Source: Eutreptiella sp. 'Long Island Sound 2002'
Lineage: Eukaryota; Protista; Euglenida
DNA length: 64,000 nt
Reading direction: 5' to 3'
NCBI GenBank assembly: GCA_964036045.1
Contig: OZ038378.1
Location: 12,772,001 to 12,836,000 of the forward strand
Position 1 is the stretch's first letter; the number at the start of each line of letters is the position of its first letter. Position numbers and translations under genes: made by a program. Under the pieces are notes generated by a model that was given only the letters and a program-made list of their open reading frames with translations, did no database searches and had not been told where the DNA came from. Positions 47,587-57,799 of the stretch are shown here, in pieces.

Positions 47587-48348
47587 TCACGGCACGGCTT
47601 CCGGATCCAGACCCCCCGGGGGCACGTAAATGTGGTCCATGTCACTTCTTGTTTGGGGGCAGAGGGTGAGTGACGCGCTGATGAGGGCCACACAGCAAAG
47701 GCACACGTTGACACTGGAGGCCGTGCCTTGTGGGGGATGATGGAGGTCCAAGGCCCTGGGGCAAACAATATTTACATTGGGCACCCACAGACGTGGGGCC
47801 TCATAGACGCGTGAAGCGATAGACAGGGCCAAGATGACGACGCTCTGGGTCTCCAGTCCCTCAGACCGGGCAACAGTTTCTGTCCAATACAAAATGTGCT
47901 GCCGGCCCAAGCCCATCTGCACGGCTGAATCGGCACGTGTACCGGGTCATTCCTTCACAAACACCCGTACAATGAAATCACAGTACAATTTGATACGCCA
48001 GCTGCCGACGGTTGACCATCAACGCCAAGGGACGCCGGCTGGCGGAGCGGTCATCCCGCCTGGCGCTGAACCGAACCCTCAATGGGGCACACCTCCTGCA
48101 CTGAGGCCGGGATGAAAGCCACAGGTCTCGAACACCGCCCGAAGGCCTACCAATGGGCGTTGGCTCGCACTCGAGGTCGCCATGGGGGTTGCTTCGGGCA
48201 ACAACGGCTCCGCCAGGCGTGCCACGGCGGTCCCGCTCAGCAGATCAGTGTCTGAAGTGACCATCCCCCACCGGCGGCTGCCGTGTAAAGTAAACAAATG
48301 CAATGCCCCAAACGGACGGTGAGAACACTTCAGAAAGAGGACAGGCAA
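47587..48348 (-). pseudogene. Possible SF1 (UvrD/Schlafen-like) helicase C-terminal pseudogene
   Basis: One frame interrupted by three TGA stops (48079, 48019, 47947). ETVARSEGLETQSVVIL...RVYEAPR resembles SF1 motifs V/VI (T-x3-KGLE...YVA-x-SRA). Confidence 0.35.
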
Positions 48349-48874
48349 AGCGAACGAGGGCTCCGTGTGTTACGGCGGCATTCTGTGCCTTGCCTTTGTT
48401 CTGCGGTAGACATGCGAGACCCAACTGTCAACCGGCAAACCGTCACTGATGAATTGCACGCCACAGGCCCCACAAAACGAAGGCGGGACTCCCCATCCGC
48501 GTGCATTGTACGCGCTGCCCTGTCTGTCGTATGACTCCCAGAGGGACTAACACGCGCATCCTCCCCTCCCCGAGCCCCTCCCCCTCCCCTCCCATTGCTC
48601 CTCTTACTCCCGTCATTTGCCCCGCTCCCGGGGGGTGAAGAGGGGAAACGGCATGAGACAACGCATACCAGTCAGAGCACGCACACTGCGTCCCAATGGT
48701 AGCCTCACTGGAAACAGAGCGAAGTCAGAGGAGGGGGATTGGGTGAGACAAATGGGAGTGACAAAGAGCCTTTTCACTCGCACTGTGAACGCCGGCCAAC
48801 CCCAAGTCTAAACCTTCGGTACAAAACCAAAAGCCCCATACCCCCAAGCGATGCCGCATATCTTCTGCACGGCA

Positions 48875-49069
48875 TTACACACGAACAAGGCGCTCTATGG
48901 GCTCACGGCACAAGGGGCAGTGCTGCAGGCTCTCAACGCAGGTGCTGCACACGTCTCCGTGGAGGCAGGGCGCCATCAGGAGCCCCACGGTGGCCATCGG
49001 CAGCCTCACAAGGCAGACTGGGCAGGTCGGGTTCTCCAGCGCTGTAATCTCGGGCTCGAAGCCCATGAC
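48875..49069 (-). CDS. Exon 5: RING-HC finger of IAP/MUL1 type (zf-C3HC4_3), ending at the stop codon
   Basis: Acceptor CCTCTGCAG|GTC. C-x2-C-x15-C-x-H-x3-C-x2-C-x6-C-x2-C followed by REPIERLVRV-stop. The spacing matches XIAP-type RINGs except for a longer first loop. Confidence 0.85.
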   Translation of the reverse strand, partial: VMGFEPEITALENPTCPVCLVRLPMATVGLLMAPCLHGDVCSTCVESLQHCPLCREPIERLVRV

Positions 49070-52000
49070 CTGCAGAGGAGGGGGTTGTGCGGTGGGGTAG
49101 GCGGGCGATGACGCCGAATAAGCCGATATTTCTGAGTTCATCCACCAGAACAGTGCCGTCCTGCAAAGCCCAACTCTGCATCTCCCCCTCCCAGCCCAGA
49201 GCTCCGAGGTCCTGTCTAAATAATGCGGCGCGTGACAATCAGCCCCAATTCACTTTAGGCTCTCCAGCTCAGGCGGGTCCATCACGCTTAGACAAAGCCG
49301 TGCTTGCATGAGGAACACAGGAGATACGAGCTTTTGATGCATCAAGGATTTGTTGGTGTTGGACGTGCTCTTGTGAACCGTCGTTTCGGTTGTGCTAATG
49401 CGCGTGCAAGACGAGTGCAAACCCCCCACGGCCTTACGTTCTTCTTGCTTCAGCAAGAAAAACAAGCGGGGGGGGGCGCAGCCGTGAAAAGTGTGGCAGA
49501 GAACAAACAGTAGCGTAACTCGGGGAGTGCCACAGGGGCATCATACTGCAGTCATGAGCAGCGGGACAAACATTCCACTCGCACCCACAAAACTGCACTC
49601 CCCATGTCAATCCCCCCAGCACACTCTGCCCCGTAGCCCCAATACTGGCGGTACCGACAAAAGCAGGTCACACACAAGACATGGCACTGGACACCCCGTG
49701 TCCCCCACAGGTCCCTGAGAACCTCCATTTTGTCCTCCCGTGTTTGAAGGGGCTCGAGGGCCCTACTCACATCCTTCCCACGCCCTGCACAGGGGGGGGT
49801 ATCTGGGCTCAGCGGGTTCCCAACAGACCTCCGTCATATAATTGGGCCACCGCCACATGGCCCCTGCATCACTGCTCATGTGTCTACGGATAGTCCCGAC
49901 CCCTGTGCCCTTGCTTGCAGCCATGGCCCTGCCCCAGGCCTCGGCCCTCCCCCCCTGGGCCTCGGCCCTCCCCCCCTGCAGCCGCCCGTCCCCCTGCCTC
50001 CCTATCTCTGCCCCTGCCAGCTCCGAATGCTTCGTCAGAGGAAAGCGCCACGGTCATCGTGCCGGCAGTGACGACGCCCTTTTGCACACACGAAACGGGC
50101 ACGGGCCACGAACCGGCACAGCCACTCCCTCTGACACTCCGTTCCCTTGCGCAGATTGTGGCGGGCCCCTTCGCCCTCGCCGTCCCCACCCGCCGAAGAG
50201 GCGACCCGGACCGCACCGATGTACCTGCCACGGATCAGTGGGGGCCTTGCGGTGGCACCGGGTGATGGCCACCTCATGTCGGCTGATGAAGGTCCCAGTC
50301 ACCGGCAGCCCATCCTCAAAACTGCCAATGAACGCCTCGTGCTGCGTGTCGCGCCAGAACAAGCGGCCCTCGCCATGCGGCACCCGGTCCCGGAACTGTC
50401 CCACATACAGAACTGCGCCTCCGTCGCCGGGCCACAGCAGATAGTCAGTGTACGGCGCCCCGCTGTTCACCGCAGAGGCTGCCGGCACCTTCAGCCGCGC
50501 CATCTGCGCACCAGCACCGGTCGCGCCGACAGCGCCAGCAAGCATCAGGACCTGGGGGGACGAGGGAACGGACAGGCGGTGATCTCAGGAACCGCCCCCC
50601 CTTGCGCAAGCACGGCCGAAGTCAGGGCAAACGATGGTCAGACCGCGTGCTAATTAGACAAGGCCGAGCTTACGCGCACACCACCAGCGGTTCTTGGGAG
50701 GTTTGGGGCTCACTACAACAACATTCACCGAAAATGACATTCAAACAAATGGAAGTGGGCTGCAGTCTTAAGCGCAATGTTGTTTGGAGCAGAAGTATGG
50801 CATTCAGGCACCGGCGGTGACTGCACGGCGAAGGGACTGCACAACGGCCTAACGTGGTGGCACTGCATCGAGGCGTTGGACACGCGTGAAATGCAAAACG
50901 ATGGGATTCGGGTGCAACATGAGCTGCACTGAGGGGGCGATCACAGGCAGACAGGCGGGGGCCGACAGGCAGACCCAGGGGCGGCATGAGAGTGGGCAAG
51001 ACAGACCGAAAGGCAGCGATTAAGGCAGACAGGCGTGACAGGCAGACAGGCCGACACGCACGCCACGGGCCCGCGGATGAACGAAGGCATAGGCACACCT
51101 CGCCCCCGACCACCGCCTTCTGCACTCGGAGCGTGGCAGGCAGCGACAGCGTGAAGGTGGATCCCGCGATGCCCCCCGCAACTGTCGCGGTGGTGGCATT
51201 GGCGGCGGCGGACGCGGTGGCGGCAGCAGCGGTGCATGAGGCCTTGGCGGCAGCGGCGTAGAACGGGGCTGCGCCCCAGGTCGTCCAGCACGCGGCCCCG
51301 GCGGCGTTCAGGGCTGAGGCCTGCGCGGACGCGGCGGCCGCCTGCGCTGCGGCCGCCATCGCCGCGGACTTGGCCAACACGAAGACCCAGCCCCCAAGTG
51401 ACAACGTCGCAACCCCAATGCCAAGCCCAACGCCTCCAATCACAAGCTCCGTGTTCCGCCGGCGGCGCGCCACGCGCGCGAGCAACGGGAAGTCCGAGCG
51501 CAGTTGCTGCAGCGCGGCATCAAAGGGCCGGCAGATCTCGGCTGCGAACAGCTCCTTCCGGTCCTGCATCCCACAACCAAACGTCACGCAGACCAGAGGA
51601 CGGGCACTGTCATGTCAACAGCCACACCCTTCCCACCTGCACCACCACCCGCCGGAGGGCGGGTTTGTGCGACCTGCCTGGCCCGTGTGGCAGTTGATGG
51701 TGATGTCATCGCGGGCAGCGTGCGATGCTGTAAGGGGGGGGGGGACATGGCTGCGCGCCGGACTCGGAGAGATGTTGGGCGAAGTGGGGTGGCGTGGTGT
51801 GCAGGGTGATGTTGTGCGGTGCAGTGCGGTGCGGTACTGCGTGTTGTCGTTGTGGCTGCTGCTGCTGGCGCCGCCGCCGCCGCCGCCGCTGCTGCTAGTG
51901 CTGCTGCTGTTGATATTCGTGTTGTGTTGACGTTGCTGTGGTGGTGGTGGTGTTATGGTTGTTGTTGTTGGGCCGGTTTTGGTCCATAGCTCCCCCATCC

Positions 52001-55000
52001 AACCCGAGTCGGTGCGGTGGGTCATGGTGCAGCTCGAGAGCAAGGCCTGGTCCTCCCGTCATCACGGGGAGCACCTCGTGTGCGAGGCCTGCGACAGGCC
52101 CTCCCGCGTTTTTCCCGGCAGGACTGCTGGGGCGATGCCTTCTGTAGGTGGTCCCTACATCAGATGGAGCTCATGGAGAGCGAGGCCTACACCAGAAACT
52201 CCCGACATTTACTCCCGACAGTTACACATCCTCCCACTCGTTCGGCTCCCAGGCTGCAGCAATATGCCCACAGATAGACCCATCCCTGGGGCTTCGACTC
52301 CAGGGCCCACGTAGGCGTAGTATTGTTATCTCGTCAAGCGGAGCCACAGCAGTACCGATAAAGGCACCGCAGGTGCCCACACGAATGGTTCGCTGTAGCA
52401 TGGGCAAAGGCAAGGGGGTACCTGTAACACGAAGCAGCTGTGCGCCTGCAGCGCTGATAGGGCCTCAAACAGGGCCCCGATGTCGTAGGCCATCGTCCGG
52501 CCCGCAAGCACACTGCTGCTGATGCCGGTCGCGAACACGGGGACGGAGTCCGCAAAGCCGGGGAACCGCACGAGCGACCGCCGGGACCGCAGCATCGCGC
52601 GGAAGTCTTGTTTCATGGATTCGATCTGCCGCTGCGGCTCCAGAGCCGCGCCGTCATCGCCGCCGTCCAGGCCCTGCGTCTCCCCGATCCGGTCCACTTG
52701 GGCGAGGACGAAGAGCACTTTGGGGAGGCCGCGGGTGTCGTGGGCGAGGGCGTCGCCCTGGAAGAGGTGCGGGGCCTCCACAGCCAGCGTGTCCACGAGG
52801 GCCGCGGTGCCCTCCGTGCACGCCGCAGCGAAGTGGATCACGACGATGACCGCGTGGCTCAGTGACAGTACGACGTCGCGAAACTGCAGTCAAGCGGACA
52901 GACATGAGGGGGCACTGGCCGACACAGGGGTGGGGGGGGGGGGCGGGAGGGTTGGGGGAACTCCTCTCGCGCGACTTTGGGCACCCGCCGTGTTATTGTG
53001 TCGTCCAACATGACGTATTTTGATATGTTTTGGTGTTCGGGTGTGGGAGACGGTCGGATGCGGCACGGGCGGTGGAGATGCCCAATGCCGGAGCCGCAAA
53101 GCCCCTCACAGTCCATCCGATTGCATTGCAGCGGCAACAGTCGCACAGACTCGGACTGAAAACTCTGGTCGCGCCCGCCCACCGAGGCCTCTATCGCTGT
53201 CATTTCATTTGGACCGGGCGGCATGTATCATGGGGCTTGGGCGGGAGGCGCAACCGTCACTCAAACTGCAACGGTTTGGTGGTTTTCGCCGGACCGCCCC
53301 CCTGCGACATGCAGTGACACAAGTCGGCAATGCTGGGAAAGCGTGGGAGTCCATCACCCCAACTTAAGGGCCCACACCAAAGTGTGGGAGTCCATGGATA
53401 AGATGAGCAAAAAAAATGTGAAAAGGGGTGGAAATGGGTGAGAGTGGGTGAAAATCCAAAAATGCCATATCCCCCATGTGGAAGAAGCATCAAAACCTAC
53501 GCTAGGGGCAACCATGATGCCCCTAGGCTCACAAAGTATGGGTCTCCAGTACGGCTAGACGCCCAAATAGTTGCACTGCGCCTGCACTGCGCTAAGGGCG
53601 CCCCCTGGGTGAGTCTGGGACACAAAGAGGGGGGTCACCCACTGGCACTGAAGTTCTGTTCGTTGGACTGAGCATGATTTGTGATGGTCCATGGGGATTG
53701 GTTTGCATGTGTACGGGAGGGAGGGGCAGACAGACAAGACCAGGCAGGCGGGTAATGCAGTCGTCCCCGTCAGTACGCACATGTCCTCCCACTTGTGCGA
53801 CCATCGATCACACATGGCGATTGACCAGGAATGCCCCCCTTACAATGCGGTGGTCATATGGCGTGCACACTTCCCTGTCTTCGAGGGGTCGGGAGGCTGC
53901 ATCATCCTTTTCGGGGAGCTGGCCCAGAGGAAACCCTTTCACAAACTCCAAACGTCTCCTCCCAAAAGCCCGCTCCAGTTCCCCCCAAGGCTCCCGGCGG
54001 AACAGGCACAGCACCGATGCTCCTGCTTTCCCACAGCCCAATACATCACTTACGACAGCCTCTTCCACGCAGATCTTGTGCTTTGAGCCCAATTCAGCCC
54101 CATTCCCAGATCATGACCACGACACAGAGCAGCTGCGCATCCCTCACACGCGTGCTGTCCACTACCGCGCCCCAGTGGCGCGCGGGGCGCCCCCACAAGG
54201 GCCCCCACCGATGCTGCGTACGGAGGCCCGAAGCTCGCCAGACGTCAGGCTTTTCGTCCAGTCGGACCAATGGCCTTGTCTCCGGCTGTGCTGCTGTGAA
54301 TACCTCCTGCACCCATCCGACCGCACCAGCACCACCACTGCGACACTGTCCCTTGTGCGGCCGGGCACCCTCACGAATTCCGGAACGGCGGCCCTCAGTC
54401 AACACCTCAGCCTCGGGCCCTATGTGACTGCGTGTTGCAGCCCCAAGAACGTAAGAATTGTTTGTGCCCACAGGACCACTCCGCTTCAGGATGCCCCCCA
54501 CTCCTGACCAAAGATCGAGTGAACTGGGGGTGGCGATGAGTCTACAATCAGATCAGAACCTGCAAGTCCAACGCTCCTCCCCCTCCGTCGAGTGAGGGCA
54601 CCCTGTAGCCCTGGTGGAACCGATTCCTGACGCTGTTGTGGACAGCTCTGCTCAACACAGCCGGCCCTCCTGAGGTGCCGTCCACACTGTTTGTCGGCCA
54701 GCGTGACGATGTCTGTGCCTACCGGATTCTTGTGGACTAGCCCCGGCTGCATCTTCAACGTCATCTGAAAGTCAAAGTGTGGTGCCCCCCAACAACGACA
54801 ACGTTCTCCGGTGCCTTTGGCAAGTCAGAAATAGCGGTCAGACGGGTGCTTAGGCCGGGTTTGCGCAAGGGCCATTAGCAGCTCAATCATGGCACATTTA
54901 CCACCAGCCGACCCTTCAACACGAGATCTCGGGGTTTGGCATATTTTCGGGGGCTTGCCACTTATAGTGTTGGGGAATGAAGCGCCGGATACTTACCCCC

Positions 55001-55850
55001 CCCCCCTTTGTAATAGCTACGCCAAAGTACGGAATTAATACGGTCCCTACGCCTACTGTAGCTATTACAAGGGCGTAGCTTGCGCACGACATGCCTTGCA
55101 TGTGGTCTCTTGTGGTGGTGCAAGAAAGGGGGATATGGTACACAAATATCCCCCAAATCAGAGCTATGTGGGTTCAAATGGGCAAACACTCACAATAAAT
55201 GTGTCCATGACCCTATGTAGCTGGCAAATTTGTCACCAAACCCATGTGTTATGCTGGTGCACTACATTTGTACTGAATTAAAATTAGGTACCAAATTAAT
55301 ACGGTCCCTACACCTACTGTAGCTATTACAAGGGCGTAGCTATTACAAGGGGGGGGGCGGGGTAGCTACCGTATACCCCCGCGTCGCAAGCATACGGTCA
55401 TCGCCAACCAGTTCAGAATCAATGGGGGGGGGGGGGGCAAGGCATCCCCTGGCAGACCTGCCGCACCGTGGCATTGTCCGCCTCGTTGTACCCCGGCGTG
55501 TCCACGAGCTTGAGCGTGTGGTCCTGCAGGCCCCACTGCGCGGAGGAGCGGCAGCGCAGCACTGCGTCCACGGTGCCGTGCCGGCCGCCGCGGGCGGTCT
55601 CATTTGCCTTCCGCAGGGCAGCGTTCACCTCCGAAGCCCCGAAGGCGGTGCCGTCCCACACGCGGAGCACTGGCGTTTCTGCGGCCACGTTGGGGAACTC
55701 GCCCTCCTGGGCCCCGCCGTCCAGGATGCAGTGGGTGACGAAGGAGGTGCAGGTGGCCTGTCCAGACGGCAGCAGCCGCTGGCCCAGCAGGGCATTGAGC
55801 AGCGTGGACTTGCCGGCGTTGATCTCGCCCACAACACTGACCGAGAGCAT
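48875..55850 (-). CDS. Five-exon gene, about 613 aa: dynamin-like GTPase + hydrophobic membrane region + MORN-like repeats + C-terminal RING (C3HC4) E3 ligase
   Basis: Manual splicing gives one open frame: exons 55850-55458, 52883-52422, 51563-51099, 50551-50225, 49069-48875. All junctions are GT-AG and phase 0 (131+154+155+109+64 codons plus stop). Motifs: GEINAGKS, DTPG, VLFVLAQVD, YVGQFRDRVPHGEG, CPVC...PCLHGDVCSTC...CPLCR. Confidence 0.75.
50225..50551 (-). CDS. Exon 4: short hydrophobic helix plus two MORN-like repeats
   Basis: Acceptor CCCCCAG|GTC, donor CAG|GTACAT (alternative phase-0 donor GAG|GTGGCC at 50272). YVGQFRDRVPHGEGRLFW and FIGSFEDGLPVTGTFI resemble the MORN consensus YxGxWxxGxxHGxG. 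Confidence 0.72.
51099..51563 (-). CDS. Exon 3: helical segment, basic patch and Gly/Ala-rich hydrophobic (membrane) region
   Basis: Acceptor TGCAG|GAC, donor GAG|GTGTGC, 465 nt. Reads RVARRRRNTELVIGGVGLGIGVATLSLGGWVFVLAK followed by a poly-Ala-rich stretch. Confidence 0.75.
52422..52883 (-). CDS. Exon 2: remainder of GTPase domain including G4 region
   Basis: Acceptor CTGCAG|TTT, donor CAG|GTACCC, 462 nt. Reads FRDVVLSLSHAVIVVIHF...KVLFVLAQVDRI...VPVFATGIS, the expected continuation after DTPG. GC3-rich codons. Confidence 0.8.
54996..55362. mobile_element. TA-flanked MITE in intron 1 of the GTPase-RING gene
   Basis: Left CCCCCCCCCCCTTTGTAATAGCTACGCC and right GGCGTAGCTATTACAAGGGGGGGGG are inverted. 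TA on both flanks. Internal direct repeat of about 45 bp (aattaatacggtccctac.cctactgtagctattacaagggcgtagct). Confidence 0.7.
55458..55850 (-). CDS. Exon 1: dynamin-like GTPase domain, G1-G3 (Dynamin_N / bacterial dynamin-like / mitofusin-like)
   Basis: MLSVSVVGEINAGKSTLLNALLGQRLLPSGQATCT...LKLVDTPGYNE. G1 GxxxxGKS, the LP-x(4)-T G2 context and G3 DTPG match dynamin-like GTPases. Donor CAG|GTCTGC at 55457. Confidence 0.85.
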
Positions 55851-55855
55851 CAATG

Positions 55856-55905
55856 CTGAGGTGCAGCGACAAAAACGGAAGATGACGGCGAAGACCCGTC
55901 CGTAC
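55856..55905 (-). promoter_or_regulatory. Polypyrimidine tract plus AG acceptor 5 nt upstream of the ATG (candidate trans-splice or cis 3' splice site)
   Basis: Minus strand reads gtcttcgccgtcatcttccgtttttgtcgctgcacctcAG|cattgATG. Confidence 0.45.
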
Positions 55906-57799
55906 CTCGAAAAAACACACGATCTGCCCGTGACATTTGGGACGTCAACAGCTATTGACCACTGACAAACGTCATTTGACTGCCAAACCGCTGGCGATCA
56001 ACCGCCAACCGCCAAAACCTCGTGTGTACACGCTAACAAACTGGTCTTGTACGCATCCTTACGCACCCGTACGTGGCCATCCATGAAGACACCAAAGCAC
56101 AAACTGTCAGGCTCAACGGAGTGCAGGACACCATTGAATGTCAGGTGTTGAATATCCGGCTGCTGAGTACATATTGCACACTACGCACTCTGCACACTGA
56201 GCACTGCACATGCACATCTACAATCTACAAACATTGTGCACACCGCACGCTACAGTGCGAACTCACCCTCATCTCTGCAGCGACGTCTACAACCACAATC
56301 ACATCCGAACCTACACCCACAGCAGTAGGTTGCCGCCCATTTTGGCAAGATCATCGGAAAAGGCGTTTCCCTGTATATCACCTATGTCACAATAGTCTCA
56401 GTAAGTTGTGGCCTAGTGCACTTCCTGGCGGCCTAGGGTCCCCGATGAACAGCATTTTCCTTCTGCCACTGGTTAAGTAAAGCAAGCTCATCATGGCAGC
56501 ATGTGGGTGGTGAAAGTTAGAAATACTTGTGTCTCAAGGAATATTTTGCATCTTTTGTAACCCTTTTTTCTTGTTTCCAAGTGCCTTCTTGGGGCAATCC
56601 CGGTTCAAAAGTCAGCTTAGTGAGTGCAACATGGTGCTCCTTGACTGCTACTGTGCTGTTGCATGGGGGAGCCCAAATTGCAATATCTTTGATGGCTCTT
56701 CTGGTGTCCATATAGGGGCAAGTGGATTGTGTTCTATGTGTGGCCCTTCACAATGCCAAATAAGTGCATCTGTAGAGGTGCACAGCACAAGAGGACAAAT
56801 CCAAATGACAACACAACACATTTCCCGTGGATGTTGCCAAATAGCTATGCCAGGCGCACCGCATCAGGTGCCCCCCCCCCCCCCCCCCCCCCTGTGGACA
56901 AACGTCACCAGGAAGAAAATTGTCTGATTGACGGTAACGCCCTTTCCTGCCCAAAGCAGCAAGGAGTGATGTGGCTTTATCACCCCTATTGTGTGAGGAC
57001 CAGCCCATTCCAATTTATGATAGAGATGGGAATTGGCCACAGTACCAGTGCTGTATTGGGGCCTATAAAAGACAAAACATAGGAATAGCATGGAAGTCGA
57101 GAGGACATGTCGCCCCAAAACCTTCCAAGGAGGGGGGGAAATTGCATGCACTCCGACATGCTCTGACAGCACCTCCTGGGACATCCCACCAGCCAAAAAT
57201 CTAGGTCAAGCAAATCATACAAATAAAAAGATGCACAGTGCACACAGTGCGCACACGTGTGTCCTGGTCGCCCCAATAGGGGGGGAGGGGGTTGCAATCC
57301 AAAGCTTCCCTACCCATGGCCATGAAAAAGTAGGGCTGTAGAGCTCAAGATACTGCAATGTCATGTGCACTTCTCACAAAGGCAAGAAAAAGCTAGCTAG
57401 AGGCAGGCTGCGCTTAAAGGAGGGCAAGGGGGCCATGAAGCAACGGATACAGAGCTCGCATATACCCCTGTGTCACAGGCATGTGGTCATCGCCACAACT
57501 CTCTCAGTGCCAAATATTGCCTTGAGTTCACCACACAAGGTGGCTATGGAATGTATGAGGGGGCAAGGTGGGTTGGGTTGGGTTGGGCTGGCGGCCTCAT
57601 GCGGGAGTAGGCCCTCGGGTGTGGGCTTCCTTCCCTGCCCCACCACGAGGCTGAACTACCTGACTGTCCGGTTCCAAGGCCGAGCGGACTATCGACAGCC
57701 ACTAGACCCCACTGAAGCGCAGGTGGGCGGAAGATACCGTCGTCCTGTGTGTAGGCGCGCGCGCGGGCAGGGGTGTGGGCGGGGGCTGGGCCTTGCGTG

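Follow-up and report, generated by a model that had tools for sequence, protein, structure and literature searches.

A protist family of dynamin-like GTPases with a MORN module and often a predicted built-in RING E3 ligase, represented by a five-exon gene of Eutreptiella

A stretch of 64,000 nucleotides from the euglenid Eutreptiella sp. 'Long Island Sound 2002' (assembly GCA_964036045.1, contig OZ038378.1, positions 12,772,001 to 12,836,000 of the forward strand; here called the window) carries on its minus strand a five-exon gene, reading from 55850 to 48875, whose spliced frame, rebuilt from the raw sequence, encodes 613 amino acids (aa). We consider it likely, from sequence and predicted structure, that this is an intact nuclear gene for a member of a small family of protist proteins, namely a membrane-anchored, cytosol-facing, fusion-type dynamin-like GTPase with a built-in ubiquitin ligase (E3). 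What appears to be new is a subfamily of the dynamin superfamily that combines the GTPase with a MORN module and often with a RING E3 domain, and for which no description was found. Profile and homologue comparisons demonstrate, at the level of the predicted proteins, the identities of the domains, their order, the conservation of this order on single transcripts elsewhere, and the integrity of the nucleotide-binding and zinc-ligand residues. The overall reading is drawn entirely from sequence and predicted structure.

Mitofusins and other membrane-remodelling GTPases of yeast and animals are controlled by ubiquitination via separate E3 ligases, whereas here both activities are predicted in one chain together with a MORN domain presumed to bind partners. 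The only described parallel to such a GTPase-RING fusion is the animal protein RNF112, and a RING joined twice, independently, to a GTPase of the dynamin superfamily would point to a general functional link between the two. The family is a candidate for a role in organelle-membrane dynamics in euglenids and dinoflagellates. The protein is compact enough for one recombinant construct to serve in a test of whether GTP controls an E3.

Gene model and protein family

All four introns are of the GT-AG type and of phase 0. The five exons are open throughout, and the catalytic and zinc-binding residues are intact. A preliminary description of this DNA had proposed five GT-AG exons forming a frame of about 613 aa, with a G1 motif GEINAGKS, a G3 motif DTPG, a hydrophobic region and a complete C3HC4 RING at the C-terminus. 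The rebuilt minus strand reproduced this frame, and each of these elements was present at its place. Positions in the following list are those of the window.

55850-55458, minus strand: exon 1, 131 aa (aa 1-131), start ATG at 55850, N-terminal half of the GTPase (G) domain
55806-55829, minus strand: G1 motif GEINAGKS (aa 8-15)
55491-55502, minus strand: G3 motif DTPG (aa 117-120)
55457-55456, minus strand: GT donor of intron 1, from the splice-site reading
52884-55457, minus strand: intron 1, 2574 nt, GT-AG, containing a very high-copy repeat and an element resembling a miniature inverted-repeat transposable element (MITE)
52883-52422, minus strand: exon 2, 154 aa (aa 132-285), C-terminal half of the G domain and start of the helical stalk
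51564-52421, minus strand: intron 2, 858 nt, GT-AG, containing a simple-repeat tract
51563-51099, minus strand: exon 3, 155 aa (aa 286-440), stalk helix with conserved RK and YP motifs, putative hydrophobic hairpin, Ala-rich linker
51333-51446, minus strand: hydrophobic Gly-rich membrane segment (aa 325-362) with a conserved central L-GG turn, presumed helical-hairpin anchor
51123-51332, minus strand: Ala/Thr/Ser-rich low-complexity linker (aa 363-432)
50552-51098, minus strand: intron 3, 547 nt, GT-AG
50551-50225, minus strand: exon 4, 109 aa (aa 441-549), conserved GG...GAxGA element and predicted MORN-type beta domain
50252-50452, minus strand: predicted MORN strands (aa 474-540) within exon 4
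49070-50224, minus strand: intron 4, 1155 nt, GT-AG
49069-48878, minus strand: exon 5, 64 aa (aa 550-613), linker with a GF[QE]P motif followed by the C3HC4 RING; stop codon at 48877-48875
48890-49033, minus strand: C3HC4 RING within exon 5, the protein ending 10 residues past the last Cys

Independent homologues searched against the window by tblastn matched the five exons only, in colinear order and with no match inside the introns. Residues 1-130 of P0003, the closest homologue, aligned to 55850-55461 and its residues 133-277 to 52880-52422 (E 2e-22, and E 3e-25 with P0009), while residues 307-370 of P0009 aligned to 51569-51384. These searches did not find a second copy of the gene in the 64,000-nt window. 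In a MAFFT alignment of the family all four predicted junctions fall into gap-free conserved columns: junction 1 is spanned by a conserved DN-x8-VxxSL and junction 3 by GGE|V, an invariant RK stands after junction 2, and GF[QE]P follows junction 4. The homologues begin at the same residue as exon 1 and end at the same position as exon 5. Hidden Markov models (HMMs) of the family, built without the window gene, also recognised this gene along its length, with 219.7 bits for the G domain, 28.3 bits for the stalk, 103.3 bits for the MORN region, 55.4 bits for the RING and 242.2 bits for the whole C-terminal part. The position of the junctions in conserved columns, the HMM scores and the exon-only colinear matches together are strong evidence that the five exons make up one gene.

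With exon 1 as query, phmmer searched 1.84 billion representative proteins and returned the window's own open reading frame (ORF) and proteins of 500-800 aa in which the GTPase starts at residue 1-4. Among the matches listed, at least 13 full-length clusters contain the C-terminal module of the family. The RING is present in seven of these 13 (P0003, P0009/P0152, P0016, P0020, P0023, P0075 and P0125) and absent from six (P0004, P0011, P0013, P0015, P0030 and P0082), in which GTPase and MORN domain nevertheless share one chain. Since the RING is missing from about half of the family, GTPase, anchor and MORN domain constitute its core. In P0003, P0016, P0020 and P0023, Pfam finds Dynamin_N N-terminally and zf-C3HC4_3 at the very C-terminus. 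The full architecture was found on single transcripts of a dinoflagellate (P0152) and of marine protists (P0003, P0016, P0020, P0023 and P0075); the homologue contigs measure about 1.9-2.4 kb and are scarcely longer than their ORFs, and they are therefore intronless transcripts from RNA assemblies and metatranscriptomes. Such same-order homologues bear out the earlier proposal that the four modules belong to one polypeptide. Neither a dinoflagellate nor a euglenid spliced leader was found at the 5'-ends of these contigs.

P0152 is a transcript of the dinoflagellate Gymnodinium catenatum from the MMETSP collection and contains both Dynamin_N and RING. In a maximum-likelihood tree this protein groups with the window gene, P0003 and P0004 (support 100/99). 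Four of the six RING-less clusters (P0030, P0011, P0015 and P0082) form one clade. One of them, P0030 (829 aa), has a WD40-like N-terminal extension of about 300 residues before the GTPase.

Further searches were less productive. Among Atlas clusters with at least 50 members none showed this architecture (search with P0075; best score 0.75). A word-indexed protein search with exon 2, the family alignment and the C-terminal region of P0003, limited by its length window and by its P-loop words, yielded self matches almost exclusively, and a metagenome locus scan keyed on the P-loop pattern confirmed five loci. Overall, the sequence comparisons support the view that the architecture represents a conserved, rare and modular protist family and not a one-off fusion. 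A full-text literature search found no published protein that joins a dynamin-like GTPase to MORN and to a RING at the C-terminus, in agreement with the preliminary description, which knew of no protein with this exact domain order; the library searched is incomplete, so that this is absence of evidence only.

Domains of the predicted protein

Exon 1 matches the Pfam family Dynamin_N with 58.1 bits (cut-off 27). Exons 2 and 3 taken alone gave no Pfam match; the Atlas features of exon 2 lean to the Dynamin/DLP_helical families. When the family profile was compared with sequences of the Protein Data Bank (PDB), the bacterial dynamin-like protein BDLP of Nostoc (2j68) was nearest (E 8e-11), over profile positions 5-214, which correspond to the whole G domain, followed by Fzo1, the Campylobacter dynamin-like protein (DLP) pair and MFN1. 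Exon 1 alone retrieved Fzo1 and BDLP first. The full-length structure considered here is an AlphaFold 2 (AF2) model of the homologue P0003, whereas exon 4 is the only part of the window's own protein that was folded. The P0003 model has a mean predicted local distance difference test score (pLDDT) of 73.8 and a predicted template modelling score (pTM) of 0.67, the pLDDT rising to 85-95 in the G domain and initial helices. With this model, Foldseek ranked BDLP, DLP1/2, Fzo1, IniA and MFN1/2 above DRP1, MxA and dynamin. Profile and model comparisons thus support the assignment of the GTPase to the BDLP/mitofusin/IniA branch of the dynamin superfamily.

The nucleotide-binding residues are intact. 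The switch-I region of the window gene reads CTSFVTH with both conserved Thr residues, and the Lys/Ser of G1, the switch-I Thr residues, the DxxG of G3 and the Asp of G4 form invariant columns throughout the family. The Pfam GBP family reached 13.2 bits on the window gene, under its cut-off of 21.1. In the window protein and all close relatives the P-loop begins at residue 8, leaving no N-terminal presequence.

In the P0003 model a stalk formed by about 75 residues of helices connects the G domain to the hydrophobic segment. In the window protein this segment has a Kyte-Doolittle mean of 1.93 over the 19 residues at aa 330-348, and every family member contains a matching hydrophobic Gly-rich stretch with a central P/L-x-GG. 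The P0003 model presents it, at low confidence, as two helices split at the GG. The adjoining linker is rich in Ala (40 of 110 residues). It is long in the window gene, P0003, P0004 and P0152, absent from compact members, and modelled with a pLDDT below 50 in P0003.

Exon 4 scores 16.6 bits against Pfam MORN, under the cut-off of 22.5. Across the family, Pfam MORN was matched at E <= 0.01 in 13 of 16 members and was detectable in P0015 (23.4 bits) and P0020. The AF2 model of exon 4 (pLDDT 88.5, pTM 0.81) consists of six strands arranged in hairpins. Compared with known structures by Foldseek and VIA, it comes closest to MORN proteins, namely the central-apparatus chain 9ijj_3Q (Z 7.1) and RSP1 (Z 6.5). 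The SET7/9 N-domain, junctophilin-2 and MORN1 were further matches, all with middling Z values (maximum 7.1). In the Atlas, 93 of the 100 clusters nearest to exon 4 are MORN. The model gives exon 4 a MORN-type beta-sheet fold. No other part of the family is as strongly conserved as the MORN region.

Exon 5 matches Pfam zf-C3HC4_3 with 35.1 bits (cut-off 27), and all eight RING ligands are present in the arrangement C-x2-C...C-x-H-x3-C-x2-C...C-x2-C. Among PDB sequences its best match is ML-IAP (E 2.5e-6), followed by cIAP2, cIAP1, CGRRF1, MIB1 and XIAP; the family profile also brings up MUL1. The 10 residues that follow the last Cys end in a hydrophobic residue, which is conserved as [VFY] in the family. 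A tail of this kind fits dimerisation via the C-terminal tail, which is suggestive only.

For the individual domains the preliminary description held up in most respects. Its dynamin-like GTPase is confirmed by the Dynamin_N score, although the relatives it named included Mx: membership in the dynamin superfamily stands, and the Mx/classical dynamin branch gives way to BDLP, Fzo1, mitofusin and IniA as nearest relatives. Its IAP/MUL1-type RING agrees with the zf-C3HC4_3 score and the IAP and MUL1 matches in PDB. Its two MORN-like repeats are upheld as a MORN-type fold by the exon 4 model and the family matches, with the window exon itself remaining under the Pfam threshold.

Proposed mechanism and alternative readings

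As a rule, G domains of the dynamin superfamily dimerise across the nucleotide site in a GTP-dependent manner, and RINGs of the IAP type that form the C-terminal end of a protein act as dimers. Because of these two properties, GTP-driven dimerisation could tether membranes and at the same time activate the E3. The hairpin is probably inserted in a cytosol-facing membrane in the manner of atlastin, Fzo1 or the BDLP paddle. Both ends of the protein are probably cytosolic, since an N-terminal targeting peptide is missing and the RING needs cytosolic E1, E2 and ubiquitin. Dimerisation of the G domains would tether molecules in cis or in trans and would bring two C-terminal RINGs together. The GTPase cycle would then gate ubiquitination, either of the protein or of partners bound to its MORN domain, which would provide a partner or membrane contact. 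In its most complete form this proposal describes a GTP-gated membrane E3, in which dimerisation of the G domains assembles the active RING dimer, and which would serve euglenids, dinoflagellates and other protists without mitofusins as the factor for organelle tethering and quality control on the cytosolic side, with an origin independent of animal RNF112. We put this forward as a tentative and rather unlikely scenario. Involvement in organelle division or quality control, or in cell-autonomous immunity, as the preliminary description proposed, is speculation.

Several observations weigh against the reading as a membrane-anchored GTPase with a built-in E3. The absence of the RING from six of the 13 clusters indicates that the E3 is inessential to the core. 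The G4-like motif in exon 2 is AQVD (aa 192-195), compared with [TS]QxD in the family and [NT]KxD as the standard; the Lys of G4 is replaced by Gln in all family members except P0023, and the Asp is invariant. The stalk is very short and no HR2-like helix (second heptad repeat) follows the anchor, so that a fusion mechanism like that of mitofusins cannot be taken for granted. The membrane segment has only moderate hydrophobicity and is modelled with a pLDDT below 50, and its proposed topology is provisional. The sequencing runs X1, X3 and X4 cover 48750-54700 with even depth across the introns and without spliced joints, which marks them as DNA runs, and the RNA-labelled run X5 has nothing over the same interval; the RNA-labelled runs, which are tiny and date from 2013, have a share of 0.00. 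Finally, RNF112 gives reason not to presume that the E3 is gated by the GTPase.

A different role of the RING is possible, and we give it an appreciable minority share of our confidence. The protein may be a machine that fuses or tethers the membrane of an organelle, for example the outer membrane of mitochondria or plastids or the endoplasmic reticulum, and its RING may do no more than ubiquitinate the protein itself so that it is disposed of after the cycle. A single chain would then contain what Mdm30, MUL1 or MARCH5 do to mitofusins in trans. The G domain is indeed nearest to fusion and tethering DLPs, the anchor follows the stalk as in atlastin or Fzo1, and the existence of RING-less members implies that the core can work without an E3. 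Ubiquitin control of mitofusins is established (PMC6533591, PMC4044952), and a preprint states that a mitochondrial fusion protein has yet to be identified in trypanosomes (10.1101/2023.06.28.546890). This explanation is weakened by the P0003 model, which has no HR2 or second helical bundle, and by the very short stalk, and it leaves the role of the MORN domain unexplained. We regard as doubtful, and less probable still, a sensor and effector of stress or defence comparable with DynA, IniA or GBP/IRG/Mx, whose GTPase would assemble on damaged or pathogen-containing membranes and whose RING would mark them with ubiquitin. There is no evidence of an expansion in copy number (one copy in the window) or of a fast-evolving recognition surface, the MORN domain being the most conserved part, although IniA and BDLPs are among the closest folds and patchy distribution, variable linkers and lineage-specific additions such as the WD40-like N-terminus of P0030 would suit a defence protein. 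DynA acts in membrane repair and phage defence (PMC12998192).

That two adjacent genes (GTPase with anchor, and MORN with RING) were wrongly joined, or that the locus is an unexpressed pseudogene, is very improbable. Such an error would be in line with the empty RNA-labelled run X5 and with a collection of about 15 billion proteins, which holds single-exon ORFs only and no full-length protein from the window gene. It is contradicted by the same order on single transcripts elsewhere, by junctions in conserved gap-free columns, by five open exons with intact catalytic and zinc residues, and by the RING-less relatives with MORN and GTPase on one chain. We retain the membrane-anchored GTPase with a built-in E3 as the likely reading.

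Intron content and comparison with known systems

The introns contain several repeats. Within intron 1, the region 53327-53724 is a very high-copy repeat with a summed contig depth of 1e4-2e5 compared with about 12-45 in the flanks (DNA runs), and many contigs break there. The repeat had no Rfam match, and the ORF at 53674-54507 that overlaps it had no Pfam match. A MITE-like element of about 365 nt lies at 54996-55360 in the same intron. Its 28-nt terminal inverted repeats (54996-55023 and 55333-55360) are 93% complementary and start with a C/G run followed by TTTGTAATAGCTACGCC, and two 54-nt direct repeats are located inside it (55027-55080 and 55288-55341). Intron 2 includes a simple-repeat tract of GCC/GCT/GTT triplet runs at 51806-51971. 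Moderately repeated regions, at about 6 to 50 times the depth of their flanks in the DNA runs, are found at 50600-50660 in intron 3 and at 49546-49744 in intron 4. Inside the latter, at 49599-49664, contigs of X1 and X3 have 30 other letters in place of 64 nt, which is probably an allelic or strain indel-substitution.

The minus strand at 55904-55926, which lies 55-75 nt upstream of the start codon, reads GTGTGTTTTTTCGAG followed directly by GTACGG, so that a T-run and CG precede a donor-like GT. This arrangement loosely resembles the 3'-end of a euglenid spliced leader, and an AG acceptor is present at 55857-55856, 5 nt before the ATG; the leader-like sequence may have arisen by chance. A search of the window with a spliced-leader pattern, allowing up to 3 mismatches, gave no match. 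Pfam matched none of ten ORFs nearby or inside the introns, and the region 48000-57000 had no Rfam match.

Among known systems, BDLP, Campylobacter DLP1/2, mycobacterial IniA and the mitofusins including Fzo1 provide the best profile and fold matches to the G domain and first helices of the window protein. They also share with it a hydrophobic membrane element after the helical region, and nucleotide-dependent dimerisation of G domains is usual in the superfamily. In contrast to this group, the window protein has a stalk of about 75 residues with no trunk, no HR2 bundle after the anchor and no N-terminal extension, a C-terminus made of MORN and RING, and a G4 motif of the type [TS/A]QxD. An identity as mitofusin (GTPase, first heptad repeat HR1, transmembrane segment, HR2) was rejected, because the anchor is followed by the beta-rich MORN domain and the RING and not by helices.

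MUL1 is a membrane-anchored protein that ubiquitinates mitofusin. The RINGs of MUL1/MAPL/GIDE and of the IAPs belong to the same zf-C3HC4_3 subtype as the RING of the window protein and likewise occupy the very C-terminus, followed by a short hydrophobic tail. The window protein differs from them by having neither BAM/GIDE nor BIR domains and by joining its RING to a GTPase. Since none of the exons has a BAM/GIDE Pfam match, MUL1/MAPL identity was rejected. Atlastin and Sey1 consist of a G domain, a short helical bundle, a transmembrane hairpin and a cytosolic tail, and mediate membrane tethering and fusion. Their overall logic is similar to that of the window protein, but the G domain of atlastin is of the GBP type and its tail is an amphipathic helix. 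ARC3, a protein of the plastid stroma, carries an FtsZ-like domain and C-terminal MORN repeats that bind partners. It thus resembles the window protein in joining a nucleotide-binding remodelling or division domain to MORN, and differs in its tubulin/FtsZ fold and in the absence of anchor and RING.

In Euglenozoa, among them Euglena longa, as well as in a dinoflagellate and further protists, a family of the dynamin superfamily named TbMfnL has been reported (10.1101/2023.06.28.546890). Its members have a GTPase followed by two C-proximal transmembrane segments that form a loop, they carry an N-terminal mitochondrial targeting signal and face the matrix, and the text of the paper contains neither MORN nor RING. 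The window protein starts 7 residues before the P-loop and has no targeting extension, and it does not fit this type; it is set apart here by the description of TbMfnL and not by its sequence.

RNF112 (ZNF179, neurolastin) is a described dynamin-superfamily protein with a C3HC4 RING, E3 activity and membrane association (PMC12012479). In this brain-specific animal protein the RING is N-terminal, the G domain is likened to that of the atlastin ATL1, and a three-helix middle domain is present (PMC12012479). The window protein, in contrast, has its RING at the C-terminus, contains MORN, which RNF112 lacks, and has a BDLP/mitofusin-like G domain. An assignment as RNF112-type RING-GTPase was rejected, as the RING lies at the opposite end and Pfam GBP stays under its cut-off (13.2 against 21.1 bits). 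Because RNF112 combines a different G-domain branch with the opposite domain order, the RING-GTPase fusions of the window family and of RNF112 look independent.

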